DNA of 64,000 bases from Macrostomum hystrix (GCA_950097015.1 CATNEN010000012.1:2170001-2234000), one strand, 5' to 3'. Numbered from the stretch's first letter, positions 36,901-62,187 are shown. Notes: generated from the sequence alone by a model not told the origin. Numbers and translations are program-made.

Positions 36901-39900
36901 GATGATGACTGACGTCATACGGCGGTCCCTAACTTCGACAGCCTGATCAGTTGCGGTGGCCACCAGCTGATAAGAAGGCACAAATGTTGGATTAGCAGTG
37001 GACAAATTGGCAGATAGGGTGAGAACTCCTGTGTCCGGGTTGAGGCTTATCACAGTGAGTCCGTTGCTGGACGAGTGAGTCAAACTGTACTTCACCAGAC
37101 CGTTGTGTCCTGCGTCTGTGTCTGTAGCATTCACCTAGGAGAGAGGGGTGGTTGGCTGATTTTACTCCGACCATACCACCTCACTCCATACATCCACCTC
37201 ACTCCATACATCCACCTCACTCCACACACCCACCTCACTCCATACATCCACCTCAATCCATACATCCACCTCACTCCATACACCAACCTCACACCATACA
37301 TCCACCTCACACCATACATCCACCTCACTCCATACATCCACCTCAGACCATACATCCACCTCAGACCATACATCCACATCAGACCATACGTCCACCTCAC
37401 TCCAAACATCCACCTCACGCCATACGTCCACCTCACTCCATACTCCATAAATCCACCTCACTCCATACATCCACCTCGATCTAAAACAGTTGATTCGCAC
37501 ATCTTGCTCTGCACAGGCACCTGTGTCAGCTCATCCGGATCCCTAAATCTGGATTAGGCAATTTTTTTCGCTTCCAGTTATTACAGGAAGCTCAGAACCA
37601 GTCTTTAAACATAGTTTTTTACAATCAGGTGCTACACCCGCCATTTAAACGCTCAGCCTCAACATCGGCAGTCTTTTGCCCGTCAACTTTCAAGTCAGGC
37701 AGCCTCTTCTTCTTCCTGCATCTCTTCCTCATCTCTTTTTGGCCTCCGCCGCTCCCAATTTTATGGTTGCTATGCGCCAGTGCTCCCAATCCTGACTGGG
37801 ATATTTCGCCATTATTTAGCAGCGTGAAAAGGGGGGCTAAGCAATCCCCCCACAATTTCTTTCCCAGTTTTACAATTGCTCTTTTTACCACAGCCAACCT
37901 CAGCCCGTTTGCACTTTAGTCTGCCGCGTGGCATTTCAAATTATACCTAGTTTACTAAGGGAATAGCTAGTGACTTCAGGAAATAACTAGATCTTTCAGG
38001 GAATAGCTAGTGACTTCAGGAAATAACTAGATCTTTCAGGGAATAGCTAGTGACTTCAGGAAATAACTAGATCTTTCAGAGAATAGCTAGATCATCCAGG
38101 GAATAGCTAGATCATCCAGGGAATAAATAAATCTTTCAGGAAATAGCTAGATCATCCAGGGAATAGCTAGATCATTCAGGGAATAACTAGATCCTTCAGG
38201 GAATAGCTAGATCATTCAGGGAATAACTAGATCATTCAGGGAATAGCTAGATCATTCAGGGAATAGCTAGATCCATCAAAGGAATAGCTAGATCATTCAT
38301 GGAATAGCTAGATCATTCAGGGAATGCTAGATCATTCAGGGTATAGCTAGATCATTCAGGGAATAGCTAGATCATTCAGGGAATAGCTAGATCATTCAGG
38401 GAATAGCTAGATCATTCATGGAATAACTAGATCATTCAGGGAATAGCTAGATCATTCAGGGAATAGCTAGATCATTCAGGGAATAGCTAGATCATTCAGG
38501 AAATAGCTAGATCATTCAGGGAATAGCTAGATCATTCAGGGAATAGCTAGATCATTCAGGGAATAGCTAGATCATTCAGGGAATAGCTAGATCATTCAGG
38601 GAATAGCTAGAGCATTCAGGGAATAGCTAGATCATTCAGGGAATAGCTAGATCATTCAGGGAATAGCTAGATCCATCAAAGGAATAGCTAGATCTATGTA
38701 CTAGTCTTACCTGTCCAATCAAGCTACCTATGCTGGCAGCTTCAGAAACGCTGAAGTTGTACTGCGCCAAATCGAACAGCGGACTATTGTCGTTAACATC
38801 AGTGAGCGAGACCAGAATGTTGCAGTTGTCGCTGCTATACCTCTCGGTTGTGTTGATCTCTCTGGCGAAAACCTGCGGCGTGTCGCATTGTAAATCATTT
38901 TTTGTAAATATGGAAGCAAAAAATACGGGGCAATACCCGGAAGACCACATTTGACTCATCCCAGTAAATCCCAGTACAATGGCATTTCTCACCGCTAACT
39001 AGCTTATACAGTACTGAAAAGCGCTGAAACTTGAAGACTTGCATTCTGGTAGTCACGCATAAGATCACTCAATATACTCTCTGAGTCGCCTTAATCCAGT
39101 ACCTCACTGAAGCATTCCTACTCAATCTGGTCAGCAATATTTATTATGCATGACTCTGGCTTGGCATTCACTGTGTACTGCCTTCGCCATGCGAAATTCT
39201 ATCAGGGGGTCCTGATTTTATTGTTTAAACTAATCTGAGTAATCTGACCGTTGTTCAGTATAGAGGAGATTGAGCACATGACTCACATTTTTGCAGTTGC
39301 TTCTTATGGCACTAATAAACTACTTTAGCTCGCGATTTCAAAAAGGTAATGCGCAGCATTCAACAGGATTCGAACTTGGGACCTTCGGAAATAAGTCAAG
39401 AAAAAAGCAATTAGAGCTGGCAGACCTACATGTTAATAGAGTTATTGAGACTGCTGTAGATATTTTTTAATTACTTTTTGTAAGGGCGTGTCCATTGGTT
39501 TCCATGGTGACAGCACGCGTTGAAATTTAACCTCAAGCCTCACTTTCACTATTTTCTCTCTCGTTATTTCTCTCTAAAAGGTTGACCACTTCTCAAAGTC
39601 TCATGCCATTGTACTAATGAGCTGTGTGTGTGTGTTTGAGCACAGTGTTTATAAATCTGGCTGCAAGTATGGGTAGCAGTTAAATTTGAAAACTAATTTG
39701 AGCTCACACACGCGGAGTAGAGTGAAGTAAGGATGGAGTATGTTTTAGTTGGTGTTGCCTTGACAACCAAACCACTGGAATTAGTTCCGTTTGCATCCCC
39801 GCTCCAGCTAGTACTTCTCGTTTCCCAACCCAGAGTGGAAGTCTGAGCTGCTCAAGATGGGTACTCATTTACTCCTCTGAGTGGGTATAATAGCCTGATG

Positions 39901-42900
39901 GGTGGAGAGAAAACTCAGGTTGCAAAAAACACTATTCCAAGCTTGACTTGATTGTCAAGCCAAATGATGCCTTGAAACTGCGAGAGCTGATGTCTAGGGA
40001 TAAAGTTGTGGTCAAAATGATTAAATTGGATTAACTGAAACTGCTAAATTGTACTGCACTGTAACTTACCTGTAACTTATAGTCCATTAATAAACTGGCT
40101 ATAAGTTAGCCAGGAGTTCAGCCAGGAGGCAATTCTGCCCATTCCGCTGACTCCTGAGCACACACGCACACAGATACCGTAAGCAGGCACACACTCACAC
40201 TTGTGTGTACATCAGCCCTGACTTTCTCATCGACAGGCAGTTTAAAATTTAAATGTGCCTTGGAGGTTGGAGGTAAATTGCACGACAAGCTCCCAAAGCC
40301 TTCTCTACGTGGCTGCGCCCCAAATGAATATGGCCTCGCCGCGGAATCGAGCTCAGGGACCTCGGTCAATAAGTAAGATTTTAGCTCGATTACTTAAAAA
40401 TCAAATATTCTATGGTCATGAGTGAGGGGTATTCCATGGACTTCTCTAGAATATAAAATCCGATTGCTTATTTTATTGACAGTTATTGGGCTCATTCTTT
40501 GCCAGGAACGCCTAGTCTATGGTTTAAAGTGCTATAATTCCAGGACCATCAAATCAAATGTAGCCGACTATCGCTCAAGATAAAAGTTGAGACCGTTGCC
40601 ATGGAAACCAGCCCACCGGGCTATCCTTGACTCGAGATTTCCCCAGTCTTTAAAACGCTCACAGGCAGCTGTGGAGAATTGGGAATAAACATTGGGAGAG
40701 AAACAGAATGAGCGAGTGTGAGCCTGACAGGTGAGCAAACATCCCTCACTCTGCTCAGGCCTTCTCACTCTAGCTCAGGCAAAATCCGGCCGTCATCAAC
40801 GGGAAAAGCAAAGAAAGCAATAGGGTGGGGGGAGATCGAAGCGAGCATTGTGTGGAACAAGTCCAATCCACATTTCTCCCCTCTATCCGAAAGAGCACTC
40901 TAGGATTTTAACAAAAAGTATATGTGCTAATTTCCGTTCCATTTGCAACATTGATTTCCCTTAATTTCTACTCACCATGGCACTCAAATATTGTATAACT
41001 AAGTGCTGCGAGTGTTAGCAGACTCGAATCCCGTATTCTGAATCTAAAACCCCGCATTCTGAATCTAAAATCCCGTATTCTGAATCTAAAATCCCGTATC
41101 CTGAATCTGAAATCCCCTATCCTGAATCTAAAATCCCGTATCCTGAATCTAAAATCCCGTATCCTGAATCTAAAATCCCGTATTCTGAATCTAAAATCCC
41201 GTATTCTGAATCTAAAATCCCGTATTCTGAATCTAAAATCCCGTATCCTGAATCTGAAATCCCGTATTCTGAATCTAAAATCCCGTATCCTGAATCTGAA
41301 ATCCCCTATCCTGAATCTAAAATCCCGTATCCTGAATCTAAAATCCCGTATCCTGAATCTAAAATCCCGTATTCTGAATCTAAAATCCCGTATCCTGAAT
41401 CTGAAATCCCCTATCCTGAATCTAAAATCCCGTATCCTGAATCTAAAATCCCGTATTCTGAATCTAAAATCCCGTATCCTGAATCTGAAATCCCCTATCC
41501 TGAATCTAAAATCCCCTATCCTGAATCTAAAATCCCCTATCCTGAATCTAAAATCCCGTATTCTGAATCTAAAATCCCGTATTCTGAATCTAAAATCCCG
41601 TATTCTGAATCTAAAATCCCGTATTCTGAATCTAAAATCCCGTATTCTGAATCTAAAATCCCGTATTCTGAATCTAAAATCCCGTATTCTGAATCTAAAA
41701 TCCCGTATTCTGAATCTAAAATCCCGTATTCTGAATCTAAAATCCAGTATTCTGAATCTAAAATCCCGTATTCTGAATCTAAAATCCCGTATTCTGAATC
41801 TAAAATCCCGTATTCTGAATCTAAAATCCCGTATTCTGAATCTAAAATCCCGTATTCTGAATCTAAAATCCCCTATCCTGAATCTAAAATCCCGTATTCT
41901 GAATCTAAAATCCCGTATTCTGAATCTAAAATCCCGTATTCTGAATCTAAAATCCCCTATCCTGAATCTAAAATCCCGTATTCTGAATCTAAAATCCCGT
42001 ATTCTGAATCTAAAATCCCGTATCCTGAATCTGAAATCCCGTATTCTGAATCTAAAATCCCGTATTCTGAATCTAAAATCCCGTATTCTGAATCTAAAAT
42101 CCCGTATTCTGAATCTAAAATCCCGTATTCTGAATCTAAAATCCCGTATTCTGAATCTAAAATCCCGTATTCTGAATCTAAAATCCCGTATTCTGAATCT
42201 AAAATCCCGTATTCTGAATCTAAAATCCCGTATTCTGAATCTAAAATCCCGTATCATGAATCTAAAATCCCGTATTCTGAATCTAAAATCCCGTATTCTG
42301 AATCTAAAATCCCGTATTCTGAATCTAAAATCCCGTATTCTGAATCTAAAATCCCGTATTCTGAATCTAAAATCCCGTATTCTGAATCTAAAATCCCGTA
42401 TTCTGAATCTAAAATCCCGTATTCTGAATCTAAAATCCCGTATTCTGAATCTAAAATCCCGTATTCTGAATCTAAAATCCCGTATTCTGAATCTAAAATC
42501 CCGTATTCTGAATCTAAAATCCCGTATTCTGAATCTAAAATCCCGTATCCTGAATCTAAAATCCCGTATTCTGAATCTAAAATCCCGTATCCTGAATCTG
42601 AAATCCCGTATTCTGAATCTAAAATCCCCTATCCTGAATCTAAAATCTCGTATTCTGAATCTAAAATCCCGTATCCTGAATCTGAAATCCCGTATCCTGA
42701 ATCTGAAATCCCGTATTCTGAATCTAAAATCTCGTATTCTGAATCTAAAATCCCGTATTCTGAATCTAAAATCCCGTATTCTGAATCTAAAATCCCGTAT
42801 TCTGAATCTAAAATCCCGTATTCTGAATCTAAAATCCCGTATCCTGAATCTAAAATCCCGTATTCTGAATCTAAAATCCCGTATTCTGAATCTAAAATCC

Positions 42901-45900
42901 CGTATTCTGAATCTAAAATCCCGTATCCTGAATCTGAAATCCCGTATCCTGAATCTAAAATCCCGTATTCTGAATCTAAAATCCCGTATTCTGAATCTAA
43001 AATCCCGTATTCTGAATCTAAAATCCCGTATCCTGAATCTAAAATCCAGTATTCTGAATCTAAAATCCCGTATCCTGAATCTAAAATCCCGTATTCTGAA
43101 TCTAAAATCCAGTATTCTGAATCTAAAATCCCGTATTCTGAATCTAAAATCCCGTATTCTGAATCTAAAATCCCGTATTCTGAATCTAAAATCCCGTATT
43201 CTGAATCTAAAATCCCGTATTCTGAATCTAAAATCCCCTATCCTGAATCTAAAATCCCGTATTCTGAATCTAAAATCCCGTATTCTGAATCTAAAATCCC
43301 GTATTCTGAATCTAAAATCCCCTATCCTGAATCTAAAATCCCGTATTCTGAATCTAAAATCCCGTATTCTGAATCTAAAATCCCGTATTCTGAATCTAAA
43401 ATCCCCTATCCTGAATCTAAAATCCCGTATTCTGAATCTAAAATCCCGTATTCTGAATCTAAAATCCCGTATTCTGAATCTAAAATCCCCTATCCTGAAT
43501 CTAAAATCCCGTATCCTGAATCTAAAATCCCCGATTCTGAATGAAAAATCTTAAATCTAAAATCTGAATCTGAATTATCGATTTCTGAGGTCGAGATCCC
43601 AATCCCGAATTCGAATCCCAAAACTGACTTTCATATCCATGACTTAAATCGTAAACTGATTGTATACCTATAGTCTCTTTATCTAGCTCATATTTACCGT
43701 TCATAATTATCCAACCAAACAACTGAATTCCCGAAAGTACACAGTTTTCAGTTCATGGGGCCGTGGTGCACTCACAATTAGGCGCAAGCTTTGCACAGTC
43801 TCCCTGTCCAGCAGGCCGGAATCGCGCACTGTGACGACTCCGGAGGCGGCGTCGATTTGAAAAGCGCCACTAGCGTCAATTAGGATGAACTCTTGCTTGG
43901 AGTTCTGCGAATGCATTTGAGCCGATATGTATAGAAAATCATGAAAACTAGACAGCAACATCTTTATAAAAATTGGTAATGAAAGCTTTTTCTAATCGCT
44001 GACCAGATCCAGATCTGAAGCGCTCAGGCGAGTCACGTAGGTGCCGACAGCCGAATTCTCAGCGATGCTGGCGTTTATAGCTGGCGGCGAAATCACTGGC
44101 CGATTGTCATTCTTGTCCAGCACTGTGACAATTACGGTCGCCAGGGCTATACGCGTGTCCGGCTTGTCCGTTTGGTAGGCCTACGGGCGGATGAAATGAT
44201 TTTAGGGTCACCCGAGACTCACTGGGGTAACCCGAGACTCACTGGGGTAACCCGAGACTCACTGGGGTCACCAGAGACTCACTGGGGTAACCCGAGACTC
44301 ACTGGGGTCACCTGCAGAGACTCACTAGGGTCACCAGAGACTCACTGGGGTCACCCGAGACTCACTGGGGTCACCCGAGACTCACTGGGGTCACCAGAGA
44401 CTCACTGGGGTCACCAGAGACTCACTGGGGTAACCCGAGACTCACTGGGGTCACCAGAGACTCACTGGGGTCACCCGAGACTCACTGGGGTCACCCGAGA
44501 CTCACTGGGGTCACCAGAGACTCACTAGGGTCACCAGAGACTCACTGGGGTCACCCGAGACTCACTAGGGTCACCAGAGACTCACTGGGGTCACCCGAGA
44601 CTCACTGGGGTCACCAGAGACTCACTAGGGTCACCAGAGACTCACTGGGGTCACCCGAGACTCACTAGGGTCACCAGAGACTCACTGGGGTAACCCGAGA
44701 CTCACTGGGGTCACCAGAGACTCACTGGGGTCACCAGAGACTCACTGGGGTAACCCGAGACTCACTGGGGTCACCAGAGACTCACTGAGGTCACCAGAGA
44801 CTCACTGAGGTCATCTATACTCTAACTCACGCGTACTACACTGTATCACACCTGAACTACACTGTATCACACCTGAGCTACACTGTATCACACCTGAACT
44901 ACACTGTATCACACCTGAACTTCACTGTATCACACCTGAGCTACACTGTATCACACCTGAACTACACTGTATCACACCTGAACTACACTGTATCACACCT
45001 GAACTACACTGTATCACACCTGAACTACACTGTATCAGTCTCCTCCATCGTGACAGCGCCTTACAAAAAGAACTTTCCTGATGAGAAGGAGGGTACAGAG
45101 GGTGGGGGTGGTTTCACTGTCAACTTTCTCACATCTCAAACTTATTTTATTGGCACTTCGGAGGAGGAGCATTTGGCTGAGTGACACTGAGTGATCTAGT
45201 TGAAGACAGTTTTTCCACTCATTCCTGCCTGAGTCAGCTGCAGGCCACTACAGTATCGCCCATTTCACTCATTGCTGGTCACAGCTGACTCAGAGCACCA
45301 GAGGTCTGTGTCAATTTCGCATTCTCTTTCAGCTCAGACACTAAAACTCCTGTCCCCCGGGAGAGGCAAGCAAACATATCATTGCAATATTGTATCTAGG
45401 CTTGAGTTTCTTTGCATACTATACAATGAGAAGGAAATTTTCACAAGAGACAGAAGGCTGGCAAACACCCAGCTAGTACAACTGACAGGCTTTGAAGGAC
45501 AGAAAAAATGACACATGATAGACTTAAACTTATACAGTAACCTACAGTAACATACAGTAACCTACAGTAACCTACAGTAACCTACAGTAACCTATACAGT
45601 AACCTACAGTAACCTACAGTAACCGACAGTAACCTACAGTAACCTACAGTAACCTACAGTAACCTACAGTAACCTATACAGTAACCTACAGTAACCTACA
45701 GTAACCTATACAGTAACCTACAGTAACCTACAGTAACCAACAGTAACCTACAGTAACCTACAGTAACCTATAGTAGCCTATACAGTAACCTACAGTAACC
45801 TACAGTCACCTACAGTAACCTACAGTAACCTACAGTAACCTACAGTAACCTATAGTAGCCTATACAGTAACCTTGCTGAGAATTTTACGTTAAACTTAAC

Positions 45901-48900
45901 AGATGGGCCAGAGAGACAAAACGGACAAACTGACAGACAACTGACTGATTTTACTGACAAAGCTGACCGTTTTACAGACAGAACTGACAGTTTTACAGAC
46001 AGGACTGACAGTTTTACAGACAAAAAAGACATCTGAGAGGTCTCATGACGGAAATCACAAAGCAGACTCACCTTGACTTGCAGCAGGATTTCGTTAGAAG
46101 TTAGAGCCTCTCGGTCAATTAGCCGAGTCACCTTGAACTCTCCCGTCGCCTCGTCGATTGTCAGAAACGTTTGGCCAGACAGACTTGCACCTGCACGATG
46201 TGGTTTCCGTATTTGAAATTTTCAAAATGTCTGTTTCAGTGAATTACGTGAAAGTGTAGCTAGGGATATGGAAGTGGCAAGGGGATATGGAAGTGGCAAG
46301 GGGATATGGAAGTGGCAAGGGGATATGGAAGTGGCAAGGGGATATGGAAGTGGCAAGGGGATATGGAAGTGGCAAGGGGATATGGAAGTGGCAAGGGGAT
46401 AAGGAAGTAGCAAGGGGATATGGAAGTGGCAAGGGGATAAGGAAGTAGCAAGGGGATAAGGAAGTAGCAAGGGGATATGGAAGTAGCAAGGGGATATGGA
46501 AGTGGCAAGGGGATAAGGAAGTAGCAAGGGGATATGGAAGTGGCAGGGGGATAAGGAAGTAGCAAGGGGATATGGAAGTAGCAAGGGGATATGGAAGTGG
46601 CAAGGGGATAAGGAAGTAGCAAGGGGATATGGAAGTGGCAGGGGGATAAGGAAGTAGCAAGGGGATATGGAAGTAGCAAGGGGATAAGGAAGTAGCAAGG
46701 GGATATGGAAGTGGCAAGGGGATATGGAAGTGGCAAGGGGATATGGAAGTAGCAAGGGGATATGGAAGTGGCAAGGGGATATGGAAGTGGCAAGTGGATA
46801 TGGAAGTGGCAACGGGATATTGGGATAAGGAGAATAGACTAAATGAAACAAATTAAGTATTGTTCAAAATAGGCAATGCACGGAGATCAAGTTATGTAGC
46901 ATTAGCCATTGCTAGCACTGTTAAGGCATAGAATAATTCAGAAACTGAGTTAAACCAAGCTTTCACCATAGTGGAACAAGATTTAGTAATAACAAAACAA
47001 AACAACATACGACAAAAGAGAACAATAGCCGTGTGGGAACAAGCGCCAGCTGCTAAGACTAACAACTATTCACCTGGATCAGAGTTTCATTAAAAGAAGC
47101 ATAAAAGAAACAAAAGAATTTTTTCCGCTATGATGAAAGAAAGCTTATGAAGATCAGGGCAATGTGCCATACTCGGCTGGCCAGAAATGCTCAAATCTTC
47201 AATAAATGAGAAGATAGCTTGTCAATCAAATTTAGAGAACTAGTTTTTTGTTGCTACTCGTAGGATTATACATTCGTAAGATATATACACTCGTATATAT
47301 CACTGGCAGTATGTATTCCACGCTTAAAACAAACTATCACAATTTTAAACTAGCGGCTTTACCAGTAGATCGGAATGTGTCTAAAATAGCGTGATGTTTT
47401 GCTTTGAAATCGTTTTTTAAAATCAAATCTGGATAGGCGATTTAGATGTGGCATAGTCCTACCTGATTGAATTTTGTAATTCACGGTCTGATTGATGCCG
47501 AGGTCCATGTCTCTAGCCCAAAGCTTTGGAATTGTTGACAGGGAAGCGTTGATGATGCTGCTGTCCTGAAATCATGAGTTTTAATCATCATGCCATGATT
47601 ATTTAACTCAAACTGGAGTTCGGATACGACTCAAACTGGAGTTCAGATACGACTCAAACTGGAGTTCGGATACGACTCAAACTGGAGTTCAGATACGACT
47701 CAAACTGGAGTTCGGATACGACTCAAACTGGAGTTCAGATACGACTCAAACTGGAGTTCAGATATGACTCAAACTGGAGTTCAGATATGACTCAAACTGG
47801 AGTTCAGATATGACTCAAACTGGAGTTCAGATGCGACTCAAACTAGAGTTCAGATGCGACTCAAACTGGAGTTCAGATACGACTCAAACTGGAGTTCAGA
47901 TATGACTCAAACTGGAGTTCAGATATGACTCAAACTGGAGTTCAGATGCGACTCAAACTGGAGTTCAGATACGACTCAAACTGGAGTTCAGATACGACTC
48001 AAACTGGAGTTCAGATACGACTCAAACAATCAGGTGATGGCTCACATTTTCCATGAACTGCAGTCGATAAGTGTCCGCCGAGAACTCCGGGCTCAAGTCA
48101 TCAAAATCAATAATGTTAATCTGCACAGTTGTGTAAGCCACAAAACCCGTCGTGGAGGCGAGCGGAGTGGCGGATATGTTCAACTGAAACAGGCGATACT
48201 GCGGCCCGGCGTCGTAGTCAAGGATCTGGTTCACTCTGAGATTACCGGATGTGCGACCGTCCTTTTCCATGGTGAAAAAGCTGGGGGCTCCGCTCTGGCG
48301 AGTGATTCGGAGGTTTCGCGATAAATACCCCAAACTAAACTAAACTGAGATCAGCCTTCTCAACTAAACTGAGATCAGCCTTCTAAACTAAACTGAGATC
48401 AGCCTTCTAAACTAAACTGAGATCAGCCTTCTAAACTAAACTGAGATCAGCCTTCTAAACTAAACTGAGATCAGCCTTCTCAACTAAACTGACAACAGCC
48501 TTCTAAACTAAACTGAGATCAGCCTTCTCAACTAAACTGAGAACAGCCTTCTAAACTAAACTGAGATCAGCCTTCTAAACTAAACTGAGATCAGACTTCT
48601 AAACTAAACTGAGATCAGCCTTCTAAACTAAACTGAGATCAGCCTTCTCAACTAAACTGAGATCAGCCTTCTAAACTAAACTGAGATCAGCCTTCTAAAC
48701 TAAACTGAGATCAGCCTTCTAAACTAAACTGAGAACAGCCTTCTCAACTAAACTGAGAACAGCCTTCTCAACTAAACTGAGATCAGCCTTCTAAACTAAA
48801 CTGAGATCAGCCTTCTAAACTAAACTGAGATCAGCCTTCTAAACTAAACTGAGATCAGCCTTCTAAACTAAACTGAGATCAGACTTCTCAACTAAACTGA

Positions 48901-51900
48901 GATCAGACTTCTAAACTAAACTGAGATCAGCCTTCTAAACTAAACTGAGATCAGACTTCTCAACTAAACTGAGATCAGCCTTCTAAACTAAACTGAGATC
49001 AGACTTCTCAACTAAACTGAGATCAGCCTTCTAAACTAAACTGAGATCAGCCTTCTAAACTAAACTGAGATCAGCCTTCTAAACTAAACTGAGATCAGCC
49101 TTCTAAACTAAACTGAGATCAGCCTTCTCAACTAAACTGAGAACAGCCTTCTAAACTAAACTGAGATCAGCCTTCTCAACTAAACTGAGAACAGCCTTCT
49201 AAACTAAACTGAGATCAGCCTTCTAAACTAAACTGAGATCAGACTTCTAAACTAAACTGAGATCAGCCTTCTAAACTAAACTGAGATCAGCCTTCTCAAC
49301 TAAACTGAGATCAGCCTTCTAAACTAAACTGAGATCAGCCTTCTAAACTAAACTGAGATCAGCCTTCTAAACTAAACTGAGAACAGCCTTCTCAACTAAA
49401 CTGAGAACAGCCTTCTCAACTAAACTGAGATCAGCCTTCTAAACTAAACTGAGATCAGCCTTCTAAACTAAACTGAGATCAGCCTTCTAAACTAAACTGA
49501 GATCAGCCTTCTAAACTAAACTGAGATCAGACTTCTCAACTAAACTGAGATCAGACTTCTAAACTAAACTGAGATCAGCCTTCTAAACTAAACTGAGATC
49601 AGACTTCTCAACTAAACTGAGATCAGCCTTCTAAACTAAACTGAGATCAGACTTCTCAACTAAACTGAGATCAGCCTTCTAAACTAAACTGAGATCAGCC
49701 TTCTCAACTAAACTGAGATCAGCCTTCTAAACTAAACTGAGATCAGCCTTCTAAACTAAACTGAGATCAGCCTTCTAAACTAAACTGAGAACAGCCTTCT
49801 AAACTAAACTGAGAACAGCCTTCTAAACTAAACTGAGATCAGCCTTCTAAACTAAACTGAGATCAGCCTTCTAAACTAAACTGAGAACAGCCTTCTAAAC
49901 TAAACTGAGATCAGCCTTCTAAACTAAACTGAGAACAGCCTTCTCAACTAAACTGAGAACAGCCTTCTAAACTAAACTGAGATCAGACTTCTAAACTAAA
50001 CTGAGATCAGCCTTCTAAACTAAACTGAGATCAGCCTTCTCAACTAAACTGAGAACAGCCTTCTAAACTAAACTGAGATCAGCCTTCTAAACTAAACTGA
50101 GATCAGCCTTCTCAACTAAACTGAGATCAGACTTCTAAACTAAACTGAGATCAGCCTTCTAAACTAAACTGAGATCAGACTTCTCAACTAAACTGAGATC
50201 AGCCTTCTAAACTAAACTGAGATCAGACTTCTCAACTAAACTGAGATCAGCCTTCTAAACTAAACTGAGATCAGCCTTCTAAACTAAACTGAGATCAGCC
50301 TTCTAAACTAAACTGAGATCAGCCTTCTAAACTAAACTGAGATCAGCCTTCTCAACTAAACTGAGATCAGCCTTCTCAACTAAACTGAGATCAGCCTTCT
50401 CAACTAAACTGAGATCAGCCTTCTCAACTAAACTGAGATCAGCCTTCTAAACTAAACTGAGATCAGCCTTCTAAACTAAACTGAGATCAGCCTTCTCAAC
50501 TAAACTGAGATCAGACTTCTAAACTAAACTGAGATCAGCCTTCTAAACTAAACTGAGATCAGCCTTCTAAACTAAACTGAGATCAGACTTCTCAACTAAA
50601 CTGAGATCAGACTTCTAAACTAAACTGAGATCAGCCTTCTAAACTAAACTGAGATCAGACTTCTCAACTAAACTGAGATCAGCCTTCTAAACTAAACTGA
50701 GATCAGACTTCTAAACTAAACTGAGATCAGCCTTCTCAACTAAACTGAGAACAGCCTTCTAAACTAAACTGAGATCAGACTTCTAAACTAAACTGAGATC
50801 AGCCTTCTAAACTAAACTGAGATCAGCCTTCTCAACTAAACTGAGAACAGCCTTCTAAACTAAACTGAGATCAGCCTTCTAAACTAAACTGAGATCAGAC
50901 TTCTAAACTAAACTGAGAACAGCCTTCTCAACTAAACTGAGAACAGCCTTCTAAACTAAACTGAGATCAGACTTCTAAACTAAACTGAGATCAGCCTTCT
51001 AAACTAAACTGAGATCAGCCTTCTCAACTAAACTGAGAACAGCCTTCTAAACTAAACTGAGATCAGCCTTCTAAACTAAACTGAGATCAGACTTCTCAAC
51101 TAAACTGAGATCAGCCTTCTAAACTAAACTGAGATCAGCCTTCTCAACTAAACTGAGATCAGCCTTCTAAACTAAACTGAGATCAGCCTTCTAAACTAAA
51201 CTGAGATCAGCCTTCTAAACTAAACTGAGAACAGCCTTCTAAACTAAACTGAGAACAGCCTTCTAAACTAAACTGAGATCAGCCTTCTAAACTAAACTGA
51301 GATCAGCCTTCTAAACTAAACTGAGAACAGCCTTCTAAACTAAACTGAGATCAGCCTTCTAAACTAAACTGAGAACAGCCTTCTCAACTAAACTGAGAAC
51401 AGCCTTCTAAACTAAACTGAGATCAGACTTCTAAACTAAACTGAGATCAGCCTTCTAAACTAAACTGAGATCAGCCTTCTCAACTAAACTGAGAACAGCC
51501 TTCTAAACTAAACTGAGATCAGCCTTCTAAACTAAACTGAGATCAGCCTTCTCAACTAAACTGAGATCAGACTTCTAAACTAAACTGAGATCAGCCTTCT
51601 AAACTAAACTGAGATCAGACTTCTCAACTAAACTGAGATCAGCCTTCTAAACTAAACTGAGATCAGACTTCTCAACTAAACTGAGATCAGCCTTCTAAAC
51701 TAAACTGAGATCAGCCTTCTAAACTAAACTGAGATCAGCCTTCTAAACTAAACTGAGATCAGCCTTCTAAACTAAACTGAGATCAGCCTTCTCAACTAAA
51801 CTGAGATCAGCCTTCTCAACTAAACTGAGATCAGCCTTCTCAACTAAACTGAGATCAGCCTTCTCAACTAAACTGAGATCAGCCTTCTAAACTAAACTGA

Positions 51901-54900
51901 GATCAGCCTTCTAAACTAAACTGAGATCAGCCTTCTCAACTAAACTGAGATCAGACTTCTAAACTAAACTGAGATCAGCCTTCTAAACTAAACTGAGATC
52001 AGCCTTCTAAACTAAACTGAGATCAGACTTCTCAACTAAACTGAGATCAGACTTCTAAACTAAACTGAGATCAGCCTTCTAAACTAAACTGAGATCAGCC
52101 TTCTAAACTAAACTGAGATCAGCCTTCTAAACTAAACTGAGATCAGACTTCTCAACTAAACTGAGATCAGCCTTCTCAACTAAACTGAGAACAGCCTTCT
52201 AAACTAAACTGAGATCAGACTTCTAAACTAAACTGAGATCAGCCTTCTAAACTAAACTGAGATCAGCCTTCTCAACTAAACTGAGAACAGCCTTCTAAAC
52301 TAAACTGAGATCAGCCTTCTAAACTAAACTGAGATCAGACTTCTAAACTAAACTGAGAACAGCCTTCTCAACTAAACTGAGAACAGCCTTCTAAACTAAA
52401 CTGAGATCAGACTTCTAAACTAAACTGAGATCAGCCTTCTAAACTAAACTGAGATCAGCCTTCTCAACTAAACTGAGAACAGCCTTCTAAACTAAACTGA
52501 GATCAGCCTTCTAAACTAAACTGAGATCAGCCTTCTCAACTAAACTGAGATCAGACTTCTAAACTAAACTGAGATCAGCCTTCTAAACTAAACTGAGATC
52601 AGACTTCTCAACTAAACTGAGATCAGCCTTCTAAACTAAACTGAGATCAGACTTCTCAACTAAACTGAGATCAGCCTTCTAAACTAAACTGAGATCAGCC
52701 TTCTAAACTAAACTGAGATCAGCCTTCTAAACTAAACTGAGATCAGCCTTCTAAACTAAACTGAGATCAGCCTTCTAAACTAAACTGAGATCAGACTTCT
52801 CAACTAAACTGAGATCAGCCTTCTAAACTAAACTGAGATCAGCCTTCTAAACTAAACTGAGATCAGCCTTCTAAACTAAACTGAGATCAGCCTTCTCAAC
52901 TAAACTGAGATCAGCCTTCTAAACTAAACTGAGATCAGCCTTCTAAACTAAACTGAGATCAGCCTTCTCAACTAAACTGAGATCAGCCTTCTCAACTAAA
53001 CTGAGAACAGCCTTCTAAACTAAACTGAGATCAGCCTTCTCAACTAAACTGAGAACAGCCTTCTAAACTAAACTGAGATCAGCCTTCTCAACTAAACTGA
53101 GATCAGCCTTCTAAACTAAACTGAGATCAGCCTTCTCAACTAAACTGAGATCAGCCATCTCAACTAAACAGAGATCAGCCTTCTAAACTAAACTGAGATC
53201 AGCCTTCTCAACTAAACTGAGATCAGCCTTCTAAACTAAACTGAGATCAGCCTTCTCAACTAAACTGAGATCAGCCTTCTAAACTGGATTTACTTGCTGT
53301 GTACAGTCACGTGACCTAGATTGAGAATGGTTTGGGCGATTTAAGCCTATCGCTTTGTAATCGAAAACATATTTTGAAGGCTGATTTCAATCAAATGAGA
53401 TGATTTAAATTGTTCAAACTGTACTAATATCATTTTTGCTTAGAAAAGGTCGAAATATAAGGCATGAATTGTTATGCTTATAGCACCGGCTAGCATATAG
53501 ATAGATTAAATAAACAGACAATAGAAAAAAAAGATCATAGGCACAATAAAAAGGCGAAGACTCTTTAGAAACTGGGTCATTTCACACCACGTTTCAATGT
53601 AGAAAAACATTTCACACCACGCAGCGCGAAGAGACAAGGCTGGGCAGCACGGGGGTGCCGGCTGAAATACAACCCAGCTAAAAGCGGAGGGGTGGGTGCC
53701 TGGGGTGGGTGCCTGGGGTGGGTGTTTACACCCAATCAGCGAGCGCCGATTGGACACGTTAGTACCACAGAAATAAATAGACAATAAGAAGTTAAAAATG
53801 AAACAAGCCTTGATCTACACCATTTTACATTCGATTTGAACAAATACGTCACCATGATTTGTCAATAAATAGATTTTTTCAACTTACGATTACGGACTAA
53901 AAAACAATGTGAAGCGAAAGTATTTGTTATGTTTGCTAATTAAAAAACGTATTTAAACTTAATTGAAATTTATCGACTACTTTCGGTTGCTAACTTACAT
54001 AAATGGCAAAGTTGAAGTCTTTGTCTTCGCGAACGTCCTTGTCATCAACTTGACCCTTGAGCGACAGAACCAGCGTGTTCACTGGGGTCGACTGAAATAT
54101 GATAAAGCAAAGATTTGTGAAGCTGTAGATGCTGGTGAGCTGAGAAATACGTTATTTAACGATTTCCCTGATTCAGAGATGTCTTAAATTTAACGATTTC
54201 CAAAGTTAGGCGATATCCCAAAATTAGCTATATCCCGAATTCTACGATATCCCGAATTCAACGATATCCCGAATTCAACTATATCCGAAATTTAGCGATA
54301 TCCAAAATTCAACGATATCCCAAATTCAACGATATCCGAAATTTAACGATATCCAAATTTCAACGATATCCGAAATTTAACGATATCCAAAATTCAACGA
54401 TATCCCAAATTCAACGATATCCCAAATTTAACGATATCACAAATTTAACGATATCACAAATTTAACGATATCACAAATTTAACGATATCACAAATTTAAC
54501 GATATCCCAAATTCAACGATGTCCCAAATTCAACGATGTCCCAAATTTAACGATATCACAAATTTAACGATATCACAAATTTAACGATATCCCAAATTCA
54601 ACGATATCCCAAATTCAACGATGTCCCAAATTCAACGATGTCCCAAATTTAACGATATCCCAAATTTAGCGACACCCGAAAGTTTCAAACGGGCTGATCT
54701 AAACTAACCTCGGAAATATTTATTGAATACAGCGAATTAATAAAGAAGGGCGGAAACTCGTCCACAGGCGTGAAGAGAACAATGAGCATGGCGGACAGGC
54801 TTGAACTGCACTGCACAGTCAGGTACACCAGCCGCATGTCTGTGATATTTCCTCCGGAGCAGGCTGTTGGCATCTCCAAGTCCACCAGTCGGTTCACGTA

Positions 54901-56884: not shown

Positions 56885-57646
56885 TTAAAATGGACCAAGG
56901 CCACGTTCAAGCCTTCCAGCCCGGCTGCAAAGGCCTGAGCAGCACTCAGAGTTGCTGTTGCAGGGCGACGCGAACCTCAGGCAGCTGACGCACCTGCCGT
57001 AGGCCGTGTTGAAATTGTCTAATTGACACACTTTGGCACCGCAGCAGGGCTGCAATTTGGAGCACCACGAACTGCTGGCTGCTGACATGTACCGAGCTGC
57101 AGGATGCTTTGCAGGAACTGCTGGCTGCTGACATGCACCGAGCTGCAGGATGCTTTGCAGGAACTGCTGGCTGCTGACATGCACCGAGCTGCAGGATGCT
57201 TTGCAGGAACTGCTGGCTGCTGACATGCACCGAGCTGCAGGATGCTTTGCAGGAACTGCTGGCTGCTGACATGCACCGAGCTGCAGGATGCTTTGCAGGA
57301 ACTGCTGGCTGCTGACATGCACCGAGCTGCAGGATGCTTTGCAGGAACTGCTGGCTGCTGACATGCACCGAGCTGCAGGATGCTTTGCAGGAACTGCTGG
57401 CTGCTGACATGCACCGAGCTGCAGGATGCTTTGCAGGAACTGCTGGCTGCTGACATGCACCGAGCTGCAGGATGCTTTGCAGGAACTGCTGGCTGCTGAC
57501 ATGCACCGAGCTGCAGGATGCTTTGCAGGAACTGCTGGCTGCTGACATGCACCGAGCTGCAGGATGCTTTGCAGGAACTGCTGGCTGCTGACATGCACCG
57601 AGCTGCAGGATGGTTTGCGCAGGAACTGCTGTCCCTGCTGCTTACA
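56885..57646 (-). pseudogene. Cys-rich knottin-like paralogue 1, interrupted by a 46-bp tandem array; probably degenerate; signal exon not found
   Basis: Open frame CKQQGQ-[array]-WCSKLQPCCGAKVC...RCVSC...CNSNSECCSGLC...*. Cys spacing matches the two intact paralogues, but the last Cys is missing. Confidence 0.6.
57068..57631. repeat. 46-bp array, 12 units, inside knottin paralogue 1
   Basis: GCACCGAGCTGCAGGATGCTTTGCAGGAACTGCTGGCTGCTGACAT. Confidence 0.95.
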
Positions 57647-57699
57647 CTATAGATTGAGTAGCTGCTCATAATGCTATCAATGTGTGATACACACTTACA

Positions 57700-57746
<47 letters not shown>

Positions 57747-57835
57747 TACTCACACTCACCCACACACTCTCAAACAAACACACTATACTCACACTCACAC
57801 ACTCTCAAACACACAACTCACACTCACAACTCACA

Positions 57836-58060
57836 ATGACAGTATGCTCTGCTGAGTCTACAGGCCGCATGTTAGTTAAAACAAATTAGGAATTGCTCAA
57901 TGCTCAATATCCATTAGCAACATGACCGAGCAGCATGCTCTGCTGAGTCTACAGGCCGCATGTTGGTTAAAACAGATTAGGAATTGCTCAATGCTCAATA
58001 TCCATTAGCAACATGACCGAGCAGCATGCTCTGCTGAGTCTACAGGCCGCATGTTGGTTA
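57836..58060. repeat. 91-bp tandem repeat, about 2.5 copies
   Basis: ATGCTCTGCTGAGTCTACAGGCCGCATGTT recurs at 57844, 57935 and 58026. Confidence 0.88.
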
Positions 58061-58183
58061 ATAAAGCTGATCAAGAGTTGCTCAAAGCCTAGTCACTTGC
58101 AACACTGACCAGAGCAGGCCGTGCAAGTCTCACAGGTGTTTCCAACATGCGGTCCGGGGCGCTGCCTTCGCATCTCCAAGCCC

Positions 58184-58189
58184 TATAAA
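58184..58189 (+). promoter_or_regulatory. TATA box of knottin gene 2
   Basis: cTATAAAg, 88 nt upstream of ATG 58272. Confidence 0.55.
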
Positions 58190-58271
58190 GCCGCTAGTCG
58201 ACTAAAGCAGATCTAGTCAGTCCACAAGCAAAGTCTGCAACCTAGCTCGTACAAACTACAGGTGAGAAATC

Positions 58272-58621
58272 ATGAAGCCAACTCTGCTGTGCTTTGCCGT
58301 GCTGTCTGTCCTGCTCATCTACAGCTCAGGTACGTGAGTCAACTGGAGAATATTCTCAACAGAAGCATTGCAGTTTCAATGGGATTTCCATTGATTCGCC
58401 ATGATCCCCAACCGGTTTCAGAGGCCTGCCGTCAGAAGGACGATCGCTGCGATGCCATCCGACCGTGGCGAAGCTGTTGCGGCGGTCTGGAGTGCCGCTC
58501 GGGTCGCTGCGTCGCCACCTGCCTGAAGCATCGCGCGAGCTGCCGACGCGACAAGGAATGCTGCTCCGGCAACTGCGAGTGGTCGCGCTGGCAGATGCAG
58601 CGAGTCTGCAAGCGGAACTGA
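58272..58621 (+). CDS. Secreted double-knot (tandem ICK-like) 12-Cys peptide, gene 2, 85 aa; exons 58272-58329 and 58422-58621
   Basis: MKPTLLCFAVLSVLLIYSSEA + CRQKDDRCDAIRPWRSCCGGLECRSGRCVATCLKHRASCRRDKECCSGNCEWSRWQMQRVCKRN*; phase-1 intron gtacgt..tttcag; ATTAAA at 58761. Confidence 0.9.
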
Positions 58622-59088
58622 CGATGCTGATCCCCGCATCTGCTGCGGTGGCGCTGGCTAGAGACTGCGCTACATGGTGTCTGTGGACTGCTGAATTTAT
58701 CTCTCAGTGTCCCTCCCCAGTGGCACTCAAATGTACTTTTATACTGTTCCTTGGCATTCAATTAAATATATTGCACAGAGAGTCACTACAGGAATGCCTG
58801 CAGTTTGTGCAAGCACCAAACCTCTGAGCTGATGTTGCGGCTTGAGTACCATGAGAGTCACTACAGTATTGTGGAAAAAAAGACTATTAATAAGGCAATT
58901 CTACATTTTTATTAAATGATCCAAAGAATTCATTTAAAAAGTTTTTAAACGATTTATTGATTTATTATTGAATATATTTTCCGTCAGAGTTGGCTGCGCA
59001 GTAATACTGTAAAATTTATTGCGCTTCACTTCTAGCTTTCTGTGAATTTTAAAACAGATAAAACTCGACAGTCATTGAAGCCACCATT

Positions 59089-61269
59089 TCACCACCACAG
59101 CCTGCAAACTCGCTGCTTCCGCCAGCGCGACCACATGCAGATGCCGGAGCAGCATTCGTTGTCGCGCCTGCAAAGTGCGCGATGCTTCAGGCAGGCGGCG
59201 ACGCAGCGACCCGAGCGGCACTCCAGACCGCCGCAACACCGGCGCGAACGTGGGTAGTAGGCACGGCAGCGATCGTACTTTTGACGGCAGCTATGAAATC
59301 CCTCTGAAAAAACAGGCGGGTAGACGGGTGTTGTTGCATTGAATTTAATACTCGCATAGAGAATGCCGCATTGAATGTTCGATAAAATTATTTTCTGGAA
59401 TTGGCATCTACTAGATACAGGATTGGCATCTACTAGGTACAGGATTGGCATCTACTAGATACAGGATTGGCATCTACTAGATACAGGATTGGCATCTACT
59501 AGATACAGGATTGGCATCTACTAGATACAGGATTGGCATCTACTAGATACAGGATTGGCATCTACTGGATACAGAATTGACATCTACTAGATACAGGATT
59601 GGCATCTACTAGATACAGGATTGGCATCTACTAGATACAGAATTGGCATCTACTAGATACCGGATTGGCATCTACTAGATACAGGATTGGCATCTACTAG
59701 ATACAGAATTGGCATCTACTAGATACCGGATTGGCATCTACTAGATACAGGATTGGCATCTACTAGATACAGGATTGGCATCTACTAGATACAGAATTGG
59801 CATCTACTAGATACAGGATTGGCATCTACTAGATACAGGATTGGCATCTACTAGATACAGAATTGGCATCTACTAGATACAGGATTGGCATCTACTAGAT
59901 ACAGGATTGGCATCTACTAGATACAGGATTGGCATCTACTAGATACAGGATTGGCATCTACTAGATACAGGATTGGCATCTACTAGATACAGGATTGGCA
60001 TCTACTAGATACAGGATTGGCATCTACTAGATACAGAATTGGCATCTACTAGATACAGGATTGGCATCTACTAGATACAGGATTGGCATCTACTAGGTAC
60101 AGGATTGGCATCTACTAGATACAGGATTGGCATCTACTAGATACAGGATTGGCATCTACTAGATACAGAATTGGCATCTACTAGATACAGGATTGGCATC
60201 TACTAGATACAGGATTGGCATCTACTAGATACAGGATTGGCATCTACTAGATACAGGATTGGCATCTACTAGATACAGGATTGACATCTACTAGATACAG
60301 GATTGGCATCTACTAGATACAGGATTGGCATCGACTAGATACAGGATTGGCATCTACTAGATACAGGATTGACATCTACTAGATACAGGATTGGCATCTA
60401 CTAGATACAGGATTGGCATCTACTAGATACAGGATTGACATCTACTAGATACAGGATCGGCATCTACTAGATACAGGATTCGCATCGACTAGATACAGGA
60501 TTGGCATCGACTAGGTACAGGATTGGCATCTACTAGATACAGGATTGGCATCTACTAGATACAGGATTGGCATCTACTAGATACAGGATTGGCATCTACT
60601 AGATACAGGATTGGCATCTACTAGATACAGAATTGGCATCTACTAGATACAGGATTGGCATCTACTAGATACAGGATTGGCATCTACTAGATACAGGATT
60701 GGCATCTACTAGATACAGGATTGGCATCTACTAGATACAGGATTGACATCTACTAGATACAGGATTGGCATCTACTAGATACAGGATTGGCATCTACTAG
60801 ATACAGAATTGGCATCTACTAGATACAGAATTGGCATCTACTAGATACAGGATTGGCATCTACTAGATACAGGATTGGCATCTACTAGATACAGGATTGG
60901 CATCTACTAGATACAGGATTGGCATCTACTAGATACAGGATTGGCATCTACTAGATACAGGATTGACATCTACTAGATACAGGATCGGCATCTACTAGAT
61001 ACAGGATTCGCATCGACTAGATACAGGATTGGCATCGACTAGGTACAGGATTGGCATCTACTAGATACAGGATTGGCATCTACTAGATACAGGATTGGCA
61101 TCTACTAGATACAGGATTGGCATCTACTAGATACAGGATTGGCCAGACAATAAATTGAGGCTTATAGATCTTCAAGATGTCGAAGTGTTTTAATCAGCAA
61201 TTTCGATTCACCTGAGCAGGAGATGAGCACAGCGGCCAGGCCAATAAGGCAGATCAGGGTCAACTTCAT
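59089..61269 (-). CDS. Secreted double-knot (tandem ICK-like) 12-Cys peptide, gene 3, 90 aa; exons 61212-61269 and 59089-59303
   Basis: MKLTLICLIGLAAVLISCSEG + FHSCRQKYDRCRAYYPRSRRCCGGLECRSGRCVAACLKHRALCRRDNECCSGICMWSRWRKQRVCRLWW*; phase-1 intron gtgaat..tttcag; AATAAA (minus strand) at 58953-58958. Confidence 0.9.
59397..61143. repeat. 22-bp array (GATACAGGATTGGCATCTACTA) filling the intron of knottin gene 3
   Basis: Direct reading; about 79 units. Confidence 0.97.
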
Positions 61270-61326
61270 GTTTGCGTTTATCGCAGTGCCGGCTTCTCGG
61301 AAATCTTCACAATTACTATTGAAGTA

Positions 61327-62102
61327 CGAGGGGTGTTGCAAAAGTTTCCGGACTAATGCTAATCCTGGTGACAACTCGTGCTTGATTTGGCTGAAAATAG
61401 ATGTCTATGGTATTCAGCCGTAGAAAATACTTTTCCTAAAATTTTATGCAGCTCAGTCAACCACAGCATACATGAGGGCCAAAATAGGTTGCAACCCTTG
61501 AAGCTGTTGACACGATTTTTCACAAACCAAAAGTGAGCGAAAATGAGTCGACCGAAGAATCCATCGGAGTTCGGGTCTAAGGAAAGCCAGCGCCACTTTA
61601 TCATGGCATGCCAACGACAGGGCAAAACTGCCGATTTCCGATTTCCACCAATTTTCACCTCTTTGGCCCAATGAAGATGCCAATGCGGGGCGAGATCTTC
61701 ACAACGCGCGAGGAGGCCCTCGAAGCAGCCAACAAGTCTCTACGTCAGTTCGATGCCAGCTTCTGGGGGTCTGGCTTCGACAAGCTGATTGAGCGCTACC
61801 GAAAGTGCATCTCCTTAAATGGCGAATACGTGGATCGAGCCAGCAACCCACCTGTGGACGCATCCGGCGATAGAAGCGACAGTGACAGTGATTGGTAGCT
61901 GTAACTCGGAAGTCGTATTTCATGACTATAATAATCTAGTGTACAATCGCTTGTTACTTTGGATCATCAACTCCAAACTTTCTAAAACTTAATATTATTT
62001 TAAAATACAGTTGCCTGTTCGTCTGTTTAAATTTTTTGCTGAATCTGATTAAAAGTATCACCATGACGAGCATTAGTCCGGAAACTTTTGCAACACCCCT
62101 CG
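61327..62102 (+). mobile_element. Internally deleted non-autonomous mariner (Tc1/mariner) element, 776 bp
   Basis: Perfect 34-bp TIRs (CGAGGGGTGTTGCAAAAGTTTCCGGACTAATGCT), TA target duplication (61325-6, 62103-4), mariner transposase C-terminal remnant FHLFGPMK..RGEIF...KLIERYRKCISLNGEYV (61608-61898). Confidence 0.93.
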
Positions 62103-62187
62103 TATTAAGGCAGGACAATTTGCCACAATGACTGTTTCAGTTGCTATTATGTAGGTTGCCAAATCGGCCTTATTGATCGCGGCAATC

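Follow-up and report, generated by a model that had tools for sequence, protein, structure and literature searches.

UPF0506 genes for predicted secreted, cationic double-knot peptides in a 64-kb stretch of Macrostomum hystrix DNA

The stretch analysed here comprises 64,000 nucleotides of Macrostomum hystrix DNA (GCA_950097015.1 CATNEN010000012.1:2170001-2234000), and "the window" below means the whole of that stretch, with positions counted from its first letter. Between positions 56,885 and 61,269 lies a small convergent/divergent cluster of two intact genes, g1 and g2, and one decayed copy, g3, which we assign to the Pfam family UPF0506. A preliminary description of this DNA had drawn each intact gene as a 58-nt exon of signal-peptide type followed by a phase-1 intron and an exon encoding 12 cysteines, with a third, diverged copy alongside. 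Inspection of the sequence and exon-wise translation confirm these gene models, and the third copy is real, although partial, with ten cysteines. The parts of the cluster are as follows.

58272-58621, plus strand: g1 gene, from exon-wise translation
58272-58329, plus strand: g1 exon 1, 58 nt (19 codons and 1 base), Met-Lys start, predicted signal-peptide-like
58330-58421, plus strand: g1 intron, 92 nt, GT..AG, phase 1
58422-58621, plus strand: g1 exon 2, the full mature 12-Cys peptide and the stop codon (TGA)
58427-58510, plus strand: g1 putative knot 1 (Cys1-Cys6)
58520-58609, plus strand: g1 putative knot 2 (Cys7-Cys12)
58184-58189, plus strand: g1 candidate core promoter TATAAA, 88 nt 5' of the start codon, a pattern match only
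58761-58766, plus strand: g1 candidate polyadenylation signal ATTAAA, 140 nt past the stop codon
61269-59089, minus strand: g2 gene, from exon-wise translation
61269-61212, minus strand: g2 exon 1, 58 nt, predicted signal-peptide-like
61211-59304, minus strand: g2 intron, 1908 nt, GT..AG, with a T-rich tract ahead of the AG, phase 1
59303-59089, minus strand: g2 exon 2, the full mature 12-Cys peptide and the stop codon
59289-59203, minus strand: g2 putative knot 1
59193-59104, minus strand: g2 putative knot 2
59015-59020, minus strand: g2 candidate polyadenylation signal AATAAA, 69 nt past the stop codon
57064-56885, minus strand: g3, a diverged partial UPF0506 copy in one part, from translation

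The two intact genes are convergent, with 467 nt separating their stop codons, and g3 lies upstream of g1 on the opposite strand. In both g1 and g2 the codon split by the phase-1 intron encodes Glu. Exon 1 of each is called signal-peptide-like because an uncharged hydrophobic core follows Met-Lys, such that 11 of the 14 core residues are hydrophobic and none is charged when judged by a composition heuristic. A scan of the 64 kb on both strands for ATG-started, phase-1, GT-ended hydrophobic exons returned exon 1 of g1, exon 1 of g2 and one other match, a poor one within a 91-bp repeat. Translation, composition and the scan support the secretory-type N-terminal exons proposed earlier, and the products of g1 and g2 are predicted to be secreted peptides of about 66-72 residues. 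Without splicing, the exon-1 frame of g1 reaches a stop in at most three codons, and annotation that does not join the 58-nt signal exon to the exon behind it misses such genes. Most of the g2 intron is a tandem array of a 22-bp unit repeated 79 times (59400-61143). The third copy, g3, is cut short at its 5' side and has lost the final Cys at its 3' end, and 10 of the 12 Cys are present; its net charge is +4, it contains no Trp, and no internal stops interrupt its 59 aligned codons. The g3 region is matched to g1 and g2 by tblastn at an expect value (E) of 1e-7, and the same scan of both strands of the window found no signal exon for it.

To what family do these peptides belong? A lineage-specific family had been proposed, and this part of the preliminary description does not hold, since UPF0506 is already in Pfam (PF11703) with bona fide members in schistosomatids; UPF0506 proteins have also been reported from cestodes, liver flukes and mosquitoes, and UPF0506-domain genes are annotated in Opisthorchis and Anopheles. 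The 59-position Pfam model matches all three copies in the window. The Pfam gathering cut-off for the family is 23.2 bits, and both g2 (24.3 bits) and g3 (33.2 bits, E 6.7e-8) exceed it. The matches span profile positions 1-56 for g1 and g2 and 8-55 for g3, and therefore the UPF0506 model already covers both of the knots described below. Alignment of the three window peptides as a profile against UPF0506 proteins of Trichobilharzia and the UPF0506 protein P0004 with hhalign gave a probability of 96.7% and an E of 3.6e-10 over 52 columns that extend across both knots. Moreover, a hidden Markov model (HMM) built solely from natural UPF0506 proteins outside the window, with the window peptides left out, scores the three real peptides at 21.5, 25.2 and 27.4 bits, and no shuffle attained these scores for g1, g2 or g3, whether all residues were permuted (2000 shuffles) or the cysteines were kept in place (another 2000). 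Because the Cys-fixed shuffles never attain the real scores, the UPF0506 match goes beyond the cysteines.

A HMMER search over 1.8 billion representative proteins returned six matches at E <= 0.001 (best E 4e-8), and the nearest representatives come from two bird schistosomes, Trichobilharzia szidati and T. regenti, where they are annotated as "UPF0506 domain-containing protein". Pfam confirmed UPF0506 in the proteins that we number P0001, P0003 (a Logan contig from run ERR4592243), P0004 and P0010. A word-indexed protein search with exon 2 of g1 gave no matches, and the same type of search with a mixed alignment added distant multi-knot proteins only. We regard g1, g2 and g3, as judged from their sequences, as additions to a family that is known but uncharacterised, and not as a new family, and we hold this assignment, together with the architecture set out here, with high confidence.

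Comparison with the Trichobilharzia relatives bears on the gene models as well. The exon bounds of a T. szidati UPF0506 gene were obtained by seeking the GT/AG pairs that reproduce the deposited protein P0007, and the gene begins with a signal exon of 73 nt; a phase-1 intron separates this from a 201-nt exon with one 12-Cys unit, and a second phase-1 intron separates that from an exon for a second unit. The layout of signal exon, phase-1 intron and one exon per unit is thus the same as in the window genes, and a phase-1 intron a few residues ahead of Cys1, common to these relatives, supports the splice model proposed for the window. The gene lies in a T. szidati locus (L001, OX235273.1, 140116284-140179409) that contains at least four such three-exon UPF0506 genes in both orientations, and the clustering of genes in both orientations is likewise shared with the window. 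Several orphan signal-type exons were also observed at L001, where the deposited model of P0001 spans 57 kb and appears to fuse the signal exon of one gene with the unit exons of another. At the protein level, the Trichobilharzia members (CAH8851311.1, A0AA85JCN7) share the 12-Cys unit of the window genes, including the conserved motifs G-x-C-V, C-L and E-C-C-S, and their halves are likewise joined by 2-3 residues. The differences are equally plain. Overall identity is about 33%, and the Trichobilharzia proteins contain two units where the window genes contain one. The fourth loop of knot 1 has 4 residues in g1 and g2 and 8-9 in Trichobilharzia, and the last loop of knot 2 has 10 residues against 4; g3 keeps the longer, more canonical knot-1 loop. 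Charge is distributed differently too, at +8 and +13 on about 66-71 residues in g1 and g2 compared with +3 on 160 residues in Trichobilharzia, and the Trp residues of g1 and g2 are a further difference. Other cationic UPF0506 proteins exist, namely P0003 (+23) and P0004 (+21). In this setting g1 and g2 appear to be a derived, cationic variant within UPF0506 whose second knot has the cysteine framework of scorpion calcins.

The cysteine pattern of the intact genes is regular. The numbers of residues between successive cysteines are 6,8,0,4,4,3,6,5,0,3,10 in g1 and 6,9,0,4,4,3,6,5,0,3,10 in g2, which is exactly the pattern of two C-C-CC-C-C halves with a 3-residue linker that had been described previously. 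Each half of each peptide therefore contains six Cys in this framework, with loop lengths permitted for a knottin. The cationic character given in the preliminary description, with estimates of +9 and +14, also stands; a recount (K+R-D-E, with the Glu of the split codon included) gives about +8 for g1 and about +13 for g2. There are three Trp in g1 and four in g2.

Are the two halves cystine knots? In sequence searches of the PDB, knot 1 aligns without gaps and with all six Cys in register to the tarantula peptide PcFK1 (E 0.0014-0.004) and also aligns to U1-TRTX-Sp1a, again from a tarantula (E 0.0014-0.006 for the two together). The loop lengths of knot 2 (6,5,0,3,10) are those of scorpion calcins, and knot 2 matches maurocalcin at E 0.17 alone and at E 0.0035 with a three-sequence profile, and imperacalcin at E 0.08. 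The calcin model Toxin_27 (PF08099) gives no match to g1 or g2 at E <= 10 and only E 4.9 for g3; since the loop lengths are nevertheless identical and individual calcins are matched, the calcin likeness is one of framework only. Taken together, the single-domain inhibitor cystine knot (ICK) peptides PcFK1, U1-TRTX-Sp1a, maurocalcin and imperacalcin align gaplessly or nearly so with six Cys in register, and knot 2 shares the basic character of the calcins, but E reaches only 0.001-0.2 and identity outside the cysteines is low (about 4 of 25 residues for maurocalcin and 6 of 25 for PcFK1). This likeness may be convergence on a common scaffold. No solved UPF0506 structure was found among the matches of the PDB sequence searches.

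An AlphaFold2 model reached a predicted local distance difference test score (pLDDT) of 76 from a single sequence and 80.4 from eight aligned sequences. Foldseek returned 41 matches to it in the PDB at E <= 10, nearly all of them knottins. The best is spinach SOTI-III, with a template modelling (TM) score of 0.76-0.78 and a root-mean-square deviation (rmsd) of 1.3 Å over 34 columns. Next come knottins of spiders, cone snails and sea anemones, and antifungal knottins. The likeness of each half to ICK toxins that had been noted earlier is thus backed by PDB sequence matches and by Foldseek knottins, all of them statistically weak. Two other readings of the 12-Cys unit were tried and rejected. 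For Dickkopf_N the Pfam score lies under the cut-off and the fold match to Dkk1 has an rmsd of 7-8 Å, and for a colipase-type domain the fold match covers only 29 columns. With these rejected, two ICK modules are favoured, and from the model and the alignments we infer that each half looks like an inhibitor cystine knot. The two modules appear to be of different kinds, since BLASTP between knot 1 and knot 2 of g1 aligns just 6-7 residues at E 0.26, and by sequence they are not detectable repeats of each other.

The pair g1 and g2 also records how these genes have changed since they duplicated. In exon 2 the two agree at 83% of DNA positions and 74% of protein positions, exon 1 is identical at 39 of 58 nt (67%) and 9 of 19 amino acids, and no similarity is detectable between the introns or the flanks of the two genes. 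The ratio of nonsynonymous to synonymous substitution rates (dN/dS) is 0.71 for the whole exon 2 and 0.85 once the Cys codons are set aside. Not one of the 12 Cys codons differs between g1 and g2, for which P = 0.0005 at the rate observed in the loops. With the Cys codons kept and the loops near-neutral, the scaffold is under constraint while the loops drift; since the duplication the cysteine scaffold has been kept and the loops have drifted almost freely. GC content at third codon positions (GC3) is 0.75-0.82 in g1 and g2 and 0.62-0.74 in neighbouring cadherin exons.

The explanation that we favour, and consider reasonably probable as a whole, is that g1 and g2 are UPF0506 double-knot genes for secreted, cationic defence peptides. 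In each gene a cleavable signal peptide would be encoded by the first exon, and a single 12-Cys unit is encoded by the second, beyond a phase-1 intron; that unit would consist of two different ICK-type modules joined by the 3-residue linker. Once in the secretory pathway, the peptide would acquire three disulfides in each knot, six in all, and would be released as a compact molecule that resists proteases, is strongly cationic and is rich in Arg and Trp. Its role may be extracellular defence through binding to anionic surfaces such as microbial envelopes and other polyanions. Of the single roles that we considered, an extracellular defence peptide is the most likely, yet we propose it only tentatively. 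What is published on UPF0506 leaves room for several roles. The family has been described as a knottin fold mainly of Schistosoma, with a member in the secretomes of Schistocephalus solidus (PMC8400842), and UPF0506 is cercaria-enriched in S. japonicum (PMC5223471). The published data, including the use of the gene as a parenchyma marker and secretion in S. solidus, neither require nor exclude a toxin, defence or seminal role.

Several results weigh against this explanation. The score of g1 against UPF0506 is 22.5 bits, which is 0.7 bits under the gathering cut-off, and the structural and PDB matches are without exception statistically weak (Foldseek E >= 0.6; PDB sequence E 0.001-0.2), although domains of 30 residues usually give such values. 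Over the whole exon, dN/dS does not fall significantly below 1 (Fisher p = 0.37). The exact peptides, or any match beyond E 1e-10, are absent among about 15 billion catalogued proteins. The sole published tissue localisation places upf0506 as a parenchyma-specific marker in Schistosoma mansoni (10.1101/2020.02.03.932004). Finally, g2 has a satellite-filled 1.9-kb intron and an inverted-repeat element 56 nt 5' of its ATG, and for this reason its expression may be poor.

Could the peptides instead be weapons aimed at other animals? One alternative is a bivalent neurotoxin, whose two knots would bind two ion-channel sites of prey or predators in the manner of DkTx, Hi1a and Xt3a, or else a calcin-like polycationic ligand; we consider this unlikely. 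The resemblance of knot 1 to tarantula toxins, together with the calcin Cys framework of knot 2 and its weak calcin match, speaks for such a toxin. However, the mature region of g1 and g2 is more conserved than the signal exon, and the usual pattern in venom peptides is the reverse. Toxin_27, as described above, does not recognise either intact peptide, and the expression of relatives in schistosome parenchyma does not imply a venom apparatus. The DkTx and Hi1a toxins, which are secreted cysteine-rich repeat proteins (SCREPs), have the same tandem ICK architecture as the window peptides, and a short linker is found in Hi1a and Xt3a as well (PMC9950431). The window genes are tandem duplicates, and, like spider ICK genes, they encode both knots in one exon that follows the signal exon across a phase-1 intron; among the spider genes, those of the Hi1a subfamily (Hc1a, U21-Hc1a) have one exon that codes for the whole bivalent peptide after such an intron (PMC13172734). 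The spider genes, unlike those in the window, carry a separate propeptide exon. Their domains, unlike the window knots, are plainly homologous to each other as repeats and are separated by linkers of 6-12 residues (PMC9950431). Xt3a (phi-Xibalbin3, from a remipede, PDB 7RZ3) has, like the window peptides, two ICK modules, a short linker and a second module with a calcin-like framework (PMC9950431), but its domains are duplicates that resemble each other, and it comes from a venom gland, unlike anything known for the window peptides. Double-ICK toxins of spiders and remipedes in general consist of recognisable duplicates (PMC6262176, PMC9950431, PMC13172734).

Xt3a, DkTx and U21-Hi1a do occur among the fold matches, yet when whole chains are superposed by Foldseek the rmsd is 7.2 Å for Xt3a (E 3) and 12-14 Å for DkTx, with E 3-6 overall, and none of DkTx, Hi1a and Xt3a is among the PDB sequence-search matches at E <= 10. 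The kinship with spider bivalent toxins that had been entertained at first is therefore not upheld: no sequence relationship to DkTx or Hi1a was detected in that search, full-length superpositions deviate by 7-14 Å, and the window knots are not mutual repeats.

A second alternative is that the peptides are endogenous extracellular proteins, products of parenchymal or secretory cells that would bind the worm's own matrix or signalling molecules and would not be weapons at all. The parenchyma-specific expression of upf0506 in S. mansoni agrees with this, as does a receptor screen in which an S. mansoni UPF0506 protein bound human IGFBP1 (10.64898/2026.06.27.734962), and UPF0506 is old and widespread in flatworms. 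A conserved housekeeping ligand, however, would less typically show near-neutral loops, turnover in copy number and one decaying copy, and the strongly cationic composition of g1 and g2 is derived, with loop lengths altered relative to Trichobilharzia. We judge an endogenous ligand improbable here.

Much less probable is that g1 and g2 are unexpressed relics, with frames intact only because the duplication is recent. No matching transcript-derived protein was present in large protein collections, the locus has been invaded by satellites and by an inverted-repeat element, g3 is clearly decayed, and the whole-exon dN/dS given above would permit this account. Against it, both copies retain 12 of 12 Cys codons, a result of low probability at the loop rate, and both are free of stops and frameshifts, with splice sites and phase intact. 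Moreover, exon 2 remains 83% identical though the introns and flanks have diverged past detection, and GC3 is high and coding-like. Least probable are reproductive (seminal-fluid or prostate) peptides that evolve fast under sexual selection, which would suit small, secreted, duplicated products with near-neutral loops, but no report on UPF0506 was found that links the family to reproductive glands.

What would the window genes mean for the family at large? The evidence points to the UPF0506 12-Cys domain being two fused, non-identical cystine knots in one exon. A bolder version of this view, to which we give only a small chance, is that UPF0506 is an ancient heterologous double-ICK module contained in one exon that is flanked by same-phase introns, of which the window genes would be a polycationic branch whose second knot has converged on the scorpion-calcin framework. 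If so, fused double knots would be widespread in flatworms, beyond the few spider and remipede venoms, and the polycationic branch could be a peptide that is not a venom and that crosses membranes or acts on them. The genes extend UPF0506, which parasitic flatworms secrete, to a flatworm that is probably free-living. The field of knottins and bivalent peptides would gain a second, non-venom source of double-knot scaffolds, and parasitologists a tractable relative in which to ask about the role of UPF0506.

The surroundings of the cluster are rich in repeats, and two further features adjoin the genes.

57069-57631, no strand: 46-bp tandem array, 12.2 copies, 99% matches (TRF), abutting the 5' side of g3
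61325-62104, no strand: 780-bp inverted-repeat element; its terminal inverted repeats measure 47 nt and are 94% complementary, and each outer end is TA

The 780-bp element begins 56 nt 5' of the g2 ATG and adjoins the gene without belonging to it. Its open reading frames (ORFs) gave no Pfam matches. Judging by its TA ends only, it may be an internally deleted element of Tc1/mariner type. Long ORFs across the 46-bp array were considered and rejected as reading-frame artefacts of the repeat. On the 5' side of g1, a 91-bp unit is repeated 2.4 times at 57840-58061, adjoining an (AC)n tract (57689-57828), and ends about 120 nt 5' of the g1 TATA box. About 30 minisatellite arrays occur in the window, with periods of 10-47 bp, lengths up to 5 kb and 85-99% homogeneity; many are intronic, and examples lie at 1-1483, 1982-3654, 28406-29270, 31250-32903, 41027-43550, 48335-53285 and 59400-61143. 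Most of the long ORFs of the window are read-through artefacts of such arrays. Rfam and tRNA scans of the window returned no matches, and a scan for bacterial promoters and terminators, which is not suited to eukaryotic DNA, was likewise empty.

Multi-knot Cys-rich proteins were also met outside animals: P0005 and P0006, both from JGI metagenome contigs, and P0002, from the foraminifer Bolivina argentea, have weak Pfam matches to UPF0506 or to spider-toxin models. Two of these three carry twin-arginine-like N-termini, which would suggest bacteria.

On its minus strand, at about 11200-38990, the window also contains a cadherin-repeat gene of very large size and many exons, which resembles Fat or protocadherin genes. 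Two candidate extra UPF0506 copies, at 28010-28168 and 38815-38889, were rejected, since they lie within cadherin exons or on the strand opposite them. A 352-residue cadherin exon of this gene finds its best match in a Macrostomum lignano protein, with 47% identity over 83% of the query, and all other matches reach at most 36%.

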